This document shows positions 12,553 through 59,295 of a stretch of 64,000 bases of DNA, one piece after another. Below the pieces are notes generated by a model, which did not search any database, was not told where the DNA came from, and saw nothing but the letters and a program-made list of their open reading frames with translations. A program made the position numbers and the translations under genes. Every line of letters starts with the position of its first letter. Within the stretch, counting starts at the first letter, position 1. Source of the DNA: Amoeboaphelidium protococcarum X5 (taxonomy: Eukaryota; Fungi; Aphelidiomycota); NCBI GenBank assembly GCA_023515725.1, contig JALDTO010000214.1, positions 62,001 to 126,000 of the forward strand. Reading direction: 5' to 3'.

Positions 12553-13508
12553 GCTCAGTGCACCTCACCTTTGCATCCCGTCTGATCTATCTCAGTCTTA
12601 ATGTATGGAATGAAGCCGGCAAGGCACTACCTGAGCTATCTCATTAGCAGTATTTCGCGTCAATGCTGGAGTATCTCTGCAACTCTGCGTTTCATCGTGA
12701 CAATGAACACACGCGAATGCTGGCTGAAACTATCGATCCTGAAGTGCGATAGAGATTGAGGCACGAAAGCCTGATTGGTCCAAATCCTAACCTGTACGTG
12801 TTTCAAGCGCGTAAGATTATTTAAGCTATCACCTGGCATCTGACTGAAACTATATGGGTCTACTAGAAGAAGGTGATTAAAGCTTGAATGGAGGCTTTTA
12901 ATGTAAAAAGCCGAAGGCTTACCGTGTTTCTATAGCTGCTCAACTCTTTGCTGACTGAAAAAGCTGTTAACACGATGGAACACTTTGGGGGCGAGTACTT
13001 GGAGATTAATCCCGCGACTCAGATACATTTGCCTCCTGATTACGATGCTGGTGAAGATGAGGAGACAATCGCGCAATAAGATGCTGCTATCAAGGACGAG
13101 TTGTTGCAATTGTTATAGGTTGAAGAAGTTCGGCACTTGGTGTGCATGCATCGTCACCATTTATTGGATATTGTCACCACTTCTTTTAAATACAGAGCTC
13201 CAAGAAGGAGATACAGTAAAAGAAAAGCATAATCTCCTAGTCAGCTGCATGGACTCATCGGTTTCAAGCGATAGAAATCGGGTAAGCTGAAGTAGCGTGA
13301 TACCCATCACACATACATGCCATCAAGAGCACACCATGCATTTCAGAATCAGGAGGGCTAGAAAGTTTTGGTCCAATATCTGATGTATTTGCGTTAAACT
13401 CTCAAGGAGCTAGGCTTGCCATCATTCAAGATTTTCCCTACTGGTACCGATGTTCCGTGCCACATCTGCTTTGACAATAAAGTTTTGGCTCAGTGGGGAT
13501 TTGAACAG

Positions 13509-13653
13509 CTATACCCTTGATCGCCACGTAGATCTTGCCCGTGTCTTGAATTCCATCGAACTTGACCAATTCATCAACACTAATGAAGTTGTCATATTAT
13601 GGAGGCGGTATACTCGTTGGATCCGGCACTTGAAAAGGTTCTTCTGAAGTCAT
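13509..13653 (-). pseudogene. Truncated 5' fragment of a cytochrome-b5-like heme/steroid-binding (Dap1/PGRMC/MAPR-type) gene inserted antisense in Fanzor1
   Basis: MTSEEPFQVPDPTSIPPPQYDNFISVDELVKFDGIQDTGKIYVAIKGI, broken just before the expected V(F/Y)DV. Confidence 0.72.
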
Positions 13654-15254
13654 ATAGGTGTCACTGTTATAGATTTGGAGAATTAAACTTGGCGGAAAAG
13701 TAAGAGCAAACCGAACAACTAAACAAAATATGATTGACAAAGCACTTTTGTTCCAAAGAGAAGCATGGCTGCCGTTCGACGGCGTTATATTGGAGTTTCT
13801 TTAATATAGAAGCAGAAACTCGGTAAGCAGAGCGACACTACCTATATACTATACTTCTTTACAACTCCTATTATCAAAAAATTCTCATTTCCCATGTTTC
13901 AGCATACGCTCTACACGCCAGTGAAATCCACGTATTCGTATCACGTCTCCTCGCATAGTTTCAGTTTGAAAACACTTTTCAGTGCTGCCATTCTCTCATT
14001 TTAGACGCTATTGTAGTTGCTCGCCTGGGCAATCAGTTGGATGAGGAGTCGGAAGAGGAGGAGGATCAACGGTAATGCATCCTAAGGTTTAAAGTTTTGG
14101 GTCTTAAACAGCGGATGGCTAAATCTAAAAACGTCAGTGTCAGTATCACCTCTGATGGTTTTGCGTGCTCCGTGTCTGTTTCAGATTAAGGTGGGAAAAC
14201 GTATGCAAATGAAGCTTCAGACCTGCAGAGAAAAGCACGAAACATTGACGTGTCTCAAGTAATTGTTGGGGCTTTTGCTTTGGAAAACTGGCGGAATCTC
14301 CAACAAAGATTAGATGGCTCTCGATTGATTGGCGTTGACCCTGGTAAGAAGAACGTACTGGTGTGGGGCGACGACGCGGACGTCGATGGTGCAATTACGC
14401 TAAAAGAAGCCAAGAAGGAGCTAAAAGAAACGGGCCACATATCTGCTGGATACTGGTAACGTCTTGCATTGACTACAGAGTCTGAAGCCCATCTGTTGCA
14501 TATCAAACCAACTGAAATCACGCTGATGGAGTAAGATATGGCCTAATCAAACACTTGCCAGTAGTATCTCGATGTTTACATCAGATATTTTGAGGACGTC
14601 TATGCCTTCTACTCAAGATGATTCCATAGTAATTGGAGATTCTGACGATTTTGCGCGACCAAGTCTGCGTTTGGTAAAGTCATCAAGATGATGTATGGCA
14701 GGCCAAAGCCACCAGTGCCTAAAATCAACGATCGGCGCCGAGGTAAAGCTGCAAAGAAGAGGAAACGCGAACTGCGTAAATATATTGGCAAGTTTTCACC
14801 TCCAGATAAGCCTCCGGTAATTGCTCTTGGTGACGCTGGTGTGAAGCACGTGCGTGGTAATCCTCCTGCTCCGGTGAGAAAACTCGCGTTTGAATTCAGT
14901 CGTCGGACATTGGTAGTTATAACGCCGGAGTTCCACACTAGCAAGCAGCACTCATTATGTCATGCAGATCTTACTGGGAGCATGAAGTGGTGATGAGGTG
15001 TCGACACAAGAAGGCAAAGAAGATACTGCCTGGTCGTCTCCGGGCTTAAACTGTCTGCATCAAAGCTGATGGTCCAGAAATCCTATCGCACGAAGTCCTG
15101 ATCTTTTTAACCGAAGAGTCCAATCAAGATTTGGAGTTTGCCCAAACTGCCAAAACACTGGATGTGACGTCTTTGTAGATCGGGACGTTAATGCTTACAG
15201 GAGTATGGCTCAAATAGTCCGCCATTACGCGATGCATGGTAGCAGACCTTAATG

Positions 15255-55627: not shown

Positions 55628-55870
55628 TAATCTTTTATTTTACAAAAGTTCCTTAAATAGCAGATAAGTTTTGTCTAATAGTAATTGATTGTAATGGGTA
55701 TTTTCTTCCATTGAAACTAATAGGTTGGGGTCAAGGGTCATGTTTGTGACTTACGAGTTTAACGTCCGATCACCGGGGGGTTGAAACTATTTCAGGCCTG
55801 CGTGATTACAATCGTCGAAAATGAAGCGCCACAATCTTTACTTCGTCGAAATCGAGATAAAGTTACAAAC

Positions 55871-56241
55871 ATGCCTAAAGTCGTGCGCTTTGATGAGAAT
55901 GTGAGAATCAATTTCATAACTCACGATGCTACTCATCGATCGAGTCTGAAATAATCTTCCTCTTCTGTTTCAAAAGCAAGCACTGTATAAAATTATGGAT
56001 GTCTCATTGCTGCAGGAGAAGATTACGATGCTATAAGCTGAATTGGAAGCAGAAAAACACCAGAATCAGCTCTATCTATAAAGGAATTATTGATAATAAA
56101 AATGTTCAAATTGCGTCTCTAAAGCAGTACACGTCGACAATGGAGTCGCGTCTCAAAGCTGTCCAATAATGTGAAGATATTGCAAGTCCTCAATCCATTG
56201 CGTCTAAGCCTATAAGCTTAGATACAGAATTCAAGGAATGA
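55871..56241 (+). pseudogene. Frameshifted small coiled-coil ORF remnant next to the Fanzor2 3' end
   Basis: MPKVVRFDENV start; heptad-like segments continue across two frame changes. Confidence 0.3.
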
Positions 56242-56329
56242 GATAATTATGTACGAGGTTGTTCGCGACGATGATTAAGCATTAGGCTATAGTGAATCGG
56301 TTTAGGAGAATAGAAAAATATATATTCTA

Positions 56330-56545
56330 CGGTACCAGGTAATGCGCTCCTTTATATTATCACTTTTTGCAAGGATGCGTGTCTTTTATTTCAAAATGTA
56401 AATAAATAATACAGTTGCTTTTACAGCCAAATATTGAAACAAAACAATTCTCGCGCTCCATGTGGGTTAATCGATCATTGGTACACTTTAAAAAAGCTCC
56501 AGCAATCTTTTCATTGGGGTCCCCACATAGCCCCTTAATAGCAGA
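56330..56545 (-). ncRNA. Candidate Fanzor2 omegaRNA scaffold
   Basis: ATGTGGG/CCCACAT pairing (56460-56466 with 56522-56528), GGGG/CCCC runs, repeated GGAGCGC, directly 3' of the nuclease ORF. Confidence 0.4.
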
Positions 56546-58884
56546 GTAATAGTATAGTACGAGCATAACGATAAGCAATTACAAAACACTTCTATGATTT
56601 AGTGATCAGATGTTAAGCAAGGCGCAATAGAGTCTCTTGCAAGACCTTCATAATGGACATCACGAACTCCTTGTATAGTGTCTAATCCGCTTAGTTCGCA
56701 GTAACCAATTTCACTTCTTCCTTAGAAAAACTTCGAGACATAACATTATATGATCCAACATTATCCCGATATGCACGAAAATCACCCAACATGAAGTACT
56801 CATCAGCACCAAGACAGTTGTGTAGCACATTCTGAAACGGATGTTGTTTCGACGTAAACTCCTCCGTTGTCACGAGCACTTACTTTCCAGATCTATTTAT
56901 ATTAGCTTATGCCATTGCAATAAGTTTCATACGACACTTGTAATGGCTAAACGCCCATAGAGTCTTCCGCGTATTTTTATGGAGAATATGCCCAGAATTT
57001 TATTAACCACGCGAGTGTGTTACCAGTACATCGGCCGTATCACTTAGAACGGGAGGTAGATTCAAACGCTTTCTCCGTTTCTTCACCATCTTAATAGTCA
57101 GAAACTCGGGAAGAATGATTAGATCATAATGCCGCATCAAAAAGTTGCCAATTCGGTTATGCAAATTCGATACATATGCAGAGAATTTGGTGTAAGCACG
57201 ACTAATGCCAATCAATATCAGTGGGAACAACATTATTCTTTGATTACTTCCATGTGTGCCATAATTCTTTCTTCTACGCTTTAAACTCCGCCAGACTCAA
57301 TTGTCCATTCTGTAAAGCAGCTGCGCGATTATCCATCTAATCTTTCAGAGACTATGCATTGGAAATCTATTCACTCTTATTCTTATATAGCTACTTGAAA
57401 TCAGGCGCAATCGCAATGAATGACCTGCGATCCAAATCGAAGACGGTCATGCTCACTCTAACACCTGGATCCACCGAGCAAGTGTTTCCAGTTTAACGGC
57501 AACGCGCATCACGGCGGCTTATAAATGATCTAGCACCTTCAAGATTCTCATCTGCATTATTCATATCTTGCAGTTGCTAGTCATACCAATCAGTGAATGG
57601 ACCTTATATACAGGAGGCATCATACGAAACAATCACAAAGAACTTTTTTCTTCTTTTCACGAGCTTGAACTCTCTTCCTCTGCCATAGCCAAACTTGATG
57701 AAACGGGGCCAGTAGTCAATCTTGCCAGGCTCTTTTAATAGAGTATCTTTGGCATACAGTTTCCCAAAGCTCTTGAGGAATGAAGGCAGTAGGCGGACGC
57801 GATTGCTATCTGGATCTACACGTGCATCTTACGCTTGAAACTGGAGCATCTAAAACTAATCATCATCTCTATTTGACATAAAGTTGTAGTCTTTGATATC
57901 ACCCTTTGTATACTTCTCATGAGCCGCATAGTAATACGTGCGAGTCGCATTAATAATCTCATCTTGCACTGTAGATGGCATTCGCATCCAACGCAATCTT
58001 GGGTCGTAATCAGGCACGCGGCACTTTTTGGCTTTGACTCAACTTAGCGCAACATGGTTCCTTAGCGCTTGTATTGACACCTTTTCTCCTTAATCTCTGG
58101 AATCATTCAAAATGTTAATGATGAAATTGACCATTTGAAACTTGAGATCCAGCCATTCATTGAATTTGTGTATGAACTTCTTATCAGGGAATATACGAAT
58201 ATTAATCGAGCGTATCTGATCATACTGATTCAGTTCGGCAATCTCTCGCCGATTTTTCATCTTGCCGATTTTTGGTTTCATGTTTTCCAACGCCACTAGA
58301 GATTCTTCCGAAAGCTGTAGCACTTTCTTCTTCTTCTTCTTCTTCAAACTCTTAGATGACGACTATTACTGCTTAGATTTCCATTTAGCCATTAGAGAGT
58401 CTGTATCTGATGCAATCTACTGATTCCGCATTTTGGATTCAATGATATTCTCAATTTAATGCTGCACCTGACTAAAACTTTACTTCTCCTGGCTCTCACT
58501 TACGTTTTGTCCCATGTCTTTACGATTCAAATTAGGATTGAACTTTGCTGTTAAGGAGTGTTCTGTTTATTAAGATTACGGTATTTGCCAGTCCTTGTCA
58601 GTGCATTTTAACAACAGTCGTTAATTGAACGCGTCTGTGTTGCCATTCCAAACATAATGTCCAAACCATTCAGATTTAGTATTATACCAAGGGGCAAATA
58701 CTGGAGCAAATGCGGCAAATGATGATGCGCCAAGTTCTTTGACTATCCGAATATCAACTTCATTGATCACCTTAGCACACACGGAGAGAAATCCGGGAAT
58801 ATCTTGATGATATGCTTAAGTTTTGAAATCTTCTAGTGCTGTCTTTGCAGCCGCAGATAATTCACGTTTTTGGCTTGGCTACAT
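56511..58884 (-). pseudogene. Fanzor2 / IS607-TnpB-type RNA-guided nuclease, disrupted
   Basis: RSINIRIFPDKK..KFNEW, RuvC-I CSVDPGVRVSMTVFD, RHYDLIILPEF..KMVKK, TRKTLWAFSHYK, RuvC-II TEEFTSK, RuvC-III YRDNVGSYNV; in-frame TGA 58039-58041; frameshift near 57200-57260. Confidence 0.87.
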
Positions 58885-59032
58885 TTTCAAATGATCAGTA
58901 TTGCGATGAAAGAATTAGAACACTGTCAGTAAGCATTGAATACAATGCAATGATGAGATGTGACACGACCAGTCATCATTTCATTGTGATATCAATGAGG
59001 ATGGTCGCAGCTTAAAACCACTCAGGAGTTAT

Positions 59033-59062
59033 AGGTATTGTTAAGGTATTGTTAAGGTATTG
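59033..59062. repeat. 11-bp tandem direct repeat (AGGTATTGTTA x2.7)
   Basis: Direct reading; ~150 bp upstream of the Fanzor2 ATG. Confidence 0.85.
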
Positions 59063-59295
59063 AGACAAGCTCAGAAGATTGGCAATAAAGTAAACGAGTA
59101 ATTAGATTATTGACTTGTATTGAAGAGTATGTAAAAATATATAGAATCTCATTGATAATCGTATTTAAAATAAGACTAACTATCATACAAATACTTTATG
59201 GATAAAAAATTTCAAAAGGACTTGGTGCACGCACGAATGATTGATCCGCTCCAATTCTTTCAACTAAAACGACTAAAGAACTTGACACGCGTATT

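Follow-up and report, generated by a model that had tools for sequence, protein, structure and literature searches.

A probable young, non-autonomous transposon of IS607 descent carrying a zinc-finger-less Fanzor2-clade nuclease in the aphelid Amoeboaphelidium protococcarum

The published signature of Fanzor nucleases consists of a DPG motif, a shifted glutamate and an RD motif (PMC10711439), and in the mimivirus protein ApmFz2 (structure 9B0L; PMC11832414) it is accompanied by a C4 zinc finger, a structured N-terminal domain and a right-end pseudoknot. ApmFz2 is the best profile and fold match of the family described here, which has the same three motifs, N-terminal domain and pseudoknot, but differs in its length (743-745 aa against 520, at about 16% identity), in the lack of the C4 finger and of a TnpA in the element, in its nuclear location in a genome where TAA and TAG encode Gln, and in its predicted target motif (A-rich plus G instead of GGG). 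IS607 elements and cyanobacterial pro-Fanzors (PMC6188088, PMC10711439, 10.1101/2023.11.20.567912) resemble it in having no true terminal inverted repeats, an asymmetric and imperfect subterminal repeat, an invariant G flanking the right end, within the RNA scaffold, and, more variably here, a GG-rich left junction. The closest relatives of the family carry an IS607 TnpA; unlike IS607, the present element has a dead tnpA frame, duplications of 1-10 bp with left-end microhomology, and a preference for A-tracts. IS607 itself is reported to make no target duplication (PMC6188088), and its TnpA tolerates unmatched cores and fixes a G at +1 of the right junction (10.1101/2023.11.20.567912). Other Fanzor carriers are more distant. 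The Helitron2-borne Fanzor1 elements CRe-1/2/3 of Chlamydomonas (PMC3627910) are likewise non-autonomous and have precisely defined 3' ends and, behind a homopolymer tract, duplications of varying length, but they encode Fanzor1, are often 5'-truncated, insert after TTTT with duplications of 7-19 bp and share their ends with known Helitrons. The Fanzor2* proteins of molluscs and Chloropicon (PMC10711439) have also parted from the IS607 TnpA, but they travel in cut-and-paste transposons with terminal inverted repeats and fixed duplications, neither of which is found here. Lastly, TnpB branches such as RIIIr-4 (PMC10691335) have lost the C4 finger and kept the catalytic site; these are prokaryotic and belong to a different clade, whereas the loss reported here maps to a eukaryotic subclade (aphelid, Tilletia, metagenome). 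Our search, confined to papers readable without subscription, retrieved no publication on a Fanzor in Amoeboaphelidium.

The window (the whole stretch analysed, 64,000 nucleotides of A. protococcarum X5 contig JALDTO010000214.1) contains on its minus strand a TnpB-like ORF that begins with an ATG at 58884 and is read with genetic code table 6 (TAA/TAG = Gln). The gene piece matched A. protococcarum entries among the NCBI proteins at 99%, which is consistent with that code. Comparison with other copies assigned the ORF to 56648-58884 and disclosed three lesions: an in-frame TGA (58039-58041), a 4-nt insertion causing a frameshift (57209-57217) and a 1-nt insertion (about 56652-56654) just ahead of the family stop codon. 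A preliminary description of the locus had pointed to 58040 and ~57230, in agreement with the first two, and had believed that there were only two lesions. Because the third lesion shifts the reading beyond the natural stop at 56648-56650, the ~790 codons then read from 58884 to 56511 exceed the natural protein of 743-745 aa, and positions 56511-56647 are in fact the 3' non-coding omegaRNA region, outside the coding sequence. The TGA is unlikely to be a sequencing error, since copy L010, at another locus, has it together with two more variants, which the two copies would share by common descent or gene conversion; the two frameshifts were private to the window copy among the copies compared, and the read data consulted for them were collapsed Logan contigs.

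Motif alignment placed the RIFP strand that starts the TnpB-like WED/REC core at 58186-58197, behind 229 codons (~230 aa in the preliminary description, which had also correctly placed the three catalytic residues), RuvC-I DPG at 57463-57471, the shifted RuvC-II glutamate with the zinc-finger-less motif (EEFTSKQHPF) at 56835-56864 and the RuvC-III (Y)RD, here YRD, at 56763-56771; the canonical RuvC-II glutamate position (57102-57113) reads LPEF. The poly-Lys run, an (AAG)n microsatellite at 58324-58344, lies ~42 codons before RIFP and not, as had been thought, just ahead of it. Its length varies from 4 to 22 codons among copies and it falls in a disordered stretch of the AlphaFold model (pLDDT under 50 at residues 166-191). 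Most Fanzors have a nuclear localization signal (PMC10530073), which makes such a role plausible for the run. Elsewhere in the window, at about 12.9-15.2 kb (12890-15200, plus strand), there is indeed the Fanzor1-type gene reported before; it is decayed and interrupted by several TGA stops and by frameshifts. Of its two CxxC pairs, the first is altered as well (TSKQHSLCH) and the second kept, and tblastn gave no match between it and the L021 Fanzor1 family. The A. protococcarum genome holds at least 36 further TnpB zinc-ribbon matches above the Pfam cut-off, which point to several other Fanzor families.

Aligned copy ends define a mobile element of about 2.78-2.79 kb (56459-59248, minus strand) with the left end (G)GCGGATC and the right end ...CCCACAT, after which comes an invariant G. 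The preliminary description had overlooked this element, its omegaRNA and its junctions. The genome contains at least 23 full-length copies with 92-99% identity, the mean identity among the copies read being 99.2% and the read depth ~30 times that of single-copy flank; these counts are approximate, as some loci may be assembly artefacts. Examples are one locus that appears twice (L006/L015) and head-to-tail partial copies abutting N gaps (G000 C244:154859-156676 and C154:389715-391482). A full intact ORF was present at 8 of the 19 distinct loci read, and is thus carried by at least eight, while one more locus differs only at the C-terminus. The preliminary description had called the gene recently inactivated, which is true of the window copy and false for the family, and the intact paralogues that it proposed to look for are numerous. 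Within the young family pN/pS is near neutral (0.86), against 0.35 in comparison with two divergent copies, and fourfold sites are saturated with respect to a sister family at 48% identity; the last two results show, at the level of sequence comparison, that the ORF has been under purifying selection between subfamilies. The sister Fanzor2 (738 aa) is intact and single-copy (L068:4320-7376; G000:C179:334124-336337), occupies the same place in two assemblies (99%) and is absent from the C235 homeolog.

That the gene is of Fanzor2 type and IS607 ancestry, as first proposed, is supported by profiles, fold and motifs alike. A profile built from 21 relatives matched ApmFz2 9B0L best in the PDB (E 7e-26) and matched no Fanzor1 structure, SpuFz1 included; relatives were encountered in metagenomes as well as in Tilletia and the chytrid Borealophlyctis. 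The structure prediction suggested in the preliminary description was run on a natural intact copy (P0042; AlphaFold, pLDDT 78.9): 9B0L was the best match in both Foldseek and VIA-align (Z 16.2, rmsd 4.3, 406 aligned residues), and SpuFz1 was absent from the fold matches of either program. Best matches therefore fall on a Fanzor2 and not outside TnpB. The link was visible only by profile or fold, since single-protein phmmer against the PDB returned nothing and Pfam detected no TnpB family, PF07282 included, in stop-free pieces of the window gene or the full sister protein. Protein searches were made with pieces of the window protein and with the natural database proteins P0042 and P0003. SVDPG was found in 19/19 copies, the shifted glutamate lies six residues ahead of the zinc-finger position and replaces the canonical one, and the D-E-D triad is invariant in the 19 copies and the clade. 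As for Fanzor1 features, SpuFz1 is not matched and a pseudoknot is present; the protein is closer to Fanzor2 and pro-Fanzors than to Fanzor1 or canonical TnpB. The phylogeny, also proposed earlier, contained a single Fanzor1 row on a long branch, and so supports subclades and not a root.

The missing zinc finger is a property of the lineage. Every copy has TSKQHPF in place of the C4 finger between TS and RD, none retains a CxxC, and the sister family also lacks these cysteines. Most relatives keep CxxC..CxxC, but Tilletia P0023 and metagenome P0006 read TTKQHPF and form one zinc-finger-less clade with the two aphelid families (support 98/97); the loss is therefore old and inherited, and its explanation by decay of the window copy, which the preliminary description had left open, was rejected. 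A separate loss was seen in the pro-Fanzor-like P0075. As it lacks the C4 finger of the 2013 Fanzor motif, the protein is filed as a derived variant and not as a canonical member. The Tilletia sequences belong to a 31-member cluster across species of that genus, including a zinc-finger-less relative in the basidiomycete Tilletia controversa (L071), and their patchy spread suggests horizontal transfer.

The N-terminal part of the protein has a different history. In ApmFz2, residues 53-130 form a domain, unseen in other TnpB structures, with two roles: completion of the RuvC fold and binding of the pseudoknot (PMC11832414). Residues 63-723 of our model align to residues 53-518 of the 9B0L chain, and 9B0L is the only structure that aligns from residue 63 (chain residue 53), TnpB and Cas12f chains doing so only from about residue 221; the structure match and the motif alignment thus place a structured N-terminal domain (RuvC-R) in the predicted model. 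In the window it spans 58492-58809 (minus strand) and is homologous to a frame overlapping IS607 tnpA in relatives. In L069, L070 and L078, the frame one base off the Fanzor N-terminus is an open IS607 TnpA catalytic domain free of stops, which in L078 matches cyanobacterial IS607 transposases, and it is likewise open in L075 and in Rivularia L079. The TnpB frame of the latter (L079:2487-4307) is open across the whole tnpA gene, its annotated start missing about 200 codons; in Moorena (L081), a single stop falls close to where the overlap ends. The Fanzor frame retains similarity in the aphelid family (z 3.6), its sister (8.2), Tilletia (14.6) and L072 (12.6), against z under 2 and 4-6 stops in the tnpA frame, which in the window copy has 5 TGA stops. 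In L077, the N-terminal motif persists although the resolvase gene is separate and on the other strand. Compared directly, the family N-terminus and the overlap frame of Borealophlyctis are weakly similar (E 0.002), and homology between these two rests on intermediates and the structure match. These comparisons show that the domain corresponds to the reading frame overlapping tnpA in relatives; from them we infer that it probably arose by overprinting on the older gene, tnpA, and was kept after the death of the latter. It would outlive tnpA because, like RuvC-R in ApmFz2, it would complete the RuvC fold and bind the pseudoknot. The extension was also considered as a new eukaryotic addition, rejected by its match to the ApmFz2 domain and the overprinted frame; as a new domain or a serine recombinase fusion, dismissed because the sequence is that of the other frame; and as the cover of a live tnpA in the other frames of the element, rejected because that frame is dead. 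In the papers searched, all of them outside subscription, there was no statement of a tnpA-overlap origin for the Fanzor2 N-terminus.

At the right end, the 189-nt 3' region (56459-56647, minus strand) is a predicted omegaRNA scaffold. Its final 8 nt (56459-56466), which are also those of the element, form a pseudoknot with the loop (56522-56529) of a hairpin at 56517-56534, ~70 nt upstream. The pairing extends over 7-9 bp with different letters in five sequence groups, every one ending in G, and is kept with changed letters in the sister family, L069, L070 and L072. Such compensatory changes show, on sequence grounds, that the pseudoknot is conserved, with the qualification that MAFFT lost the register of distant RNA ends, that pairing was read without a formal pair count, and that ends were assigned by eye from the pairing itself (L069, L070), by homology and the empty site (L068) or by the contig end (L072). 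The folding energy of the whole 3' region was no better than that of shuffled sequences (z 0.85). A pseudoknot and a fixed right-flanking nucleotide have been described for IS607 TnpB and Fanzor2, and by the same rules (PMC10711439) the predicted guide would be the flank after the invariant G (56439-56458, minus strand).

The ends have no true terminal inverted repeats but an imperfect subterminal inverted repeat (about 14/18 nt) at unequal distances from them: the right arm (56470-56486) stops ~10 nt inside the element, and the left arm (59225-59246) has a 4-nt insertion private to the window copy. Right junctions are exact, with a G in 26/27 and a free second base, while left junctions are GG-rich but variable. 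Targets consist of an A-rich tract followed by G, which in the window lies at 59252-59261 (minus strand) and is the predicted TAM side. The first 1-10 bp of the right flank recur at the left junction. The summed duplication was 62, against 34 +/- 3 in shuffled pairings (maximum 47 in 20000), and duplications of at least 6 bp occurred in 4/19 against 0.05 in shuffles; for duplications of at least 2 bp alone the excess was not significant (13 against 10, P 0.06). This junction set leaves out the left ends of 3 full copies, most junctions of the 1.17-kb family described below, and nested inserts. Where the repeat is long, it takes the place of the initial bases of the left end, at a point of microhomology. 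In the window copy, the duplication is GGAGCG, with the right copy at 56454-56459 and the left one at 59247-59252 (both minus strand), where the last GCG doubles as the left end of the element. No gap is needed to fit the empty homeologous site L064 to this 6-bp duplication, and an empty allele matching the window site was present in a biofilm run; the single-copy sister element obeys the same junction rule with respect to its empty homeolog on C235. The L064 junction was read directly from the sequences, both intergenic stretches holding unrelated inserts: L064:3480-4050, ~25 nt from the empty site, has inverted ends rich in GGTCC/GGACC, and window 55752-56440 is unrelated to the homeolog. 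We also observed that 52% of 27 right flanks have a CpG no more than 8 nt from the junction, against 20% of comparable window sites.

A non-coding family of 1.17 kb, with at least 13 copies that are 79-93% alike, has both ends in common with the Fanzor2 element, and the junction rule held in the three copies read. It was found at L060-L062 and, in G000, on C57, C69, C137, C146, C155, C207, C211, C214 and C264, and it also has the 3' part of the omegaRNA. It may be both a non-autonomous element and a donor of guide RNA ('ghost'). Two wider pairs of these ends, on C207 (8.7 kb) and C214 (3.3 kb), were considered as autonomous parents and rejected, as they are 1.17-kb copies split by inserts; that of C207 (G000:C207:35815-43309) is ~7.5 kb long, contains Helitron Rep hits and leaves a 7-nt overlap of the halves.

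We consider it probable that the element is a young, non-autonomous, IS607-derived transposon with a Fanzor2-clade nuclease and an omegaRNA at its right end, of which the window copy is a dead member; this judgement covers the whole reading, the proposed steps of its movement included. The mobiliser is a separate matter. The preliminary description saw no serine recombinase in the window, and rightly so: the tnpA frame is dead, and genome searches with two family models and three related proteins as queries detected no TnpA, although they were made without a eukaryotic positive control and the tnpA genes of relatives have introns. No end-to-end (circle) joint was seen in four runs of collapsed contigs, which drop rare forms. 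An IS607-type serine transposase that is missing from the assembly, recently lost or too diverged is still, in our estimate, the single likeliest candidate, with a chance somewhat short of even. A Helitron-type HUH Rep/helicase acting in trans could instead mobilise the same Fanzor2 cargo, as has been suggested for the Fanzor1 elements of Chlamydomonas: variable duplications and asymmetric repeats fit the description of CRe (PMC3627910), the genome has five Helitron Rep hits, and a hairpin ends ~14 nt ahead of the right end. We nevertheless regard this as rather unlikely, given IS607 ancestry, a target tract that is A-rich plus G and not T-rich, the lack of a CTRR end, 5' ends that are nearly always complete, and the fact that the sole Rep inside a pair of these ends belongs to a nested insert splitting a 1.17-kb copy. 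Variable duplications, an exact 3' junction and 5' microhomology are also typical of target-primed reverse transcription, and a transcript copied into DNA at a nick, by the reverse transcriptase of the host or of a LINE, with the left junction closed at microhomology, would account for all three, as well as for right flanks that resemble the left end slightly above background (2.8 against 2.4 of 8 nt, P 0.04). There is no poly(A), no carried-over 3' flank and almost no 5' truncation, and a left subterminal motif conserved in the unrelated non-coding family points to a DNA end-binding protein, for which reasons we find this route improbable.

A slimmer chance still goes to movement with no transposase at all, in which host repair would copy the element into sites opened by Fanzor itself. 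Blank TnpA searches, an ORF selected between subfamilies and repair-like left junctions are in its favour, but guide-directed choice of new sites was rejected, as right flanks are not alike (mutual best match 7.8 against 7.5 +/- 0.24 shuffled), and insertion occurs at the TAM edge, whereas the RuvC cuts of known TnpB and Fanzor nucleases fall far from the TAM. Moreover, TnpB is dispensable for IS607 transposition (PMC6188088). What probability remains falls to other enzymes. Across these routes, there is a doubtful but appreciable prospect that the lineage has left IS607 chemistry, keeping the overprinted domain, losing tnpA and the zinc finger, and moving by a route undescribed for OMEGA elements (exact right-end joining at A-tract plus G and a repair-finished left end) through a borrowed non-IS607 enzyme or the nuclease and host repair. 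The protein, too, could be read otherwise, namely as a catalytically impaired, binding-only factor (an RNA-guided repressor or a mere hitch-hiker) in which zinc-finger loss ended cleavage. While the universal lack of the finger and near-neutral variation among young copies would suit it, we give this little credence: the catalytic triad is invariant, the zinc-finger-less region is still modelled by AlphaFold as a beta-hairpin (pLDDT 70-90), and large TnpB branches without the finger are thought to be active (PMC10691335).

Returning to the probable reading of an IS607-derived transposon with a nuclease, intact copies would make a transcript whose 3' part is the omegaRNA, with a guide taken from the flank, and the nuclease would cut alleles that lack the element and have an A-rich plus G TAM, whether on a homologue or a homeologue. 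Repair templated by the filled allele would then keep or spread the element, in a genome where homeologous duplicates would often make an empty allele available. We infer this cutting and repair step, taken from TnpB/Fanzor biology (PMC13565253), by analogy. Jumps to new sites would need an end-binding enzyme in trans; an IS607-type TnpA would join the right end exactly at the target G, and host repair would often finish the left junction at microhomology, giving rise to the 1-10 bp duplications.

The single broken copy of the window is of little weight alone. It is a long-standing question how TnpB/Fanzor elements without a transposase multiply, and the culturable, polyploid A. protococcarum makes it testable, since it has more than 20 recent copies, some with intact ORFs, as well as homeologous sites that are empty and a non-coding family with the same ends; it also offers a natural zinc-finger-less Fanzor2 with a predicted A-rich plus G TAM. 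New results are the right-end pseudoknot, the junction pattern checked against empty sites, the partner family and the tracing of the N-terminal extension to a frame overprinted on IS607 tnpA. The last of these suggests a possible origin of this Fanzor2-specific domain in a second frame over the transposase gene. Some annotated cyanobacterial pro-Fanzors would then lack up to about 200 N-terminal codons, as in Rivularia, and, if true, this would be a clear case of an overprinted domain that became a structural part of a nuclease and outlived the transposase.
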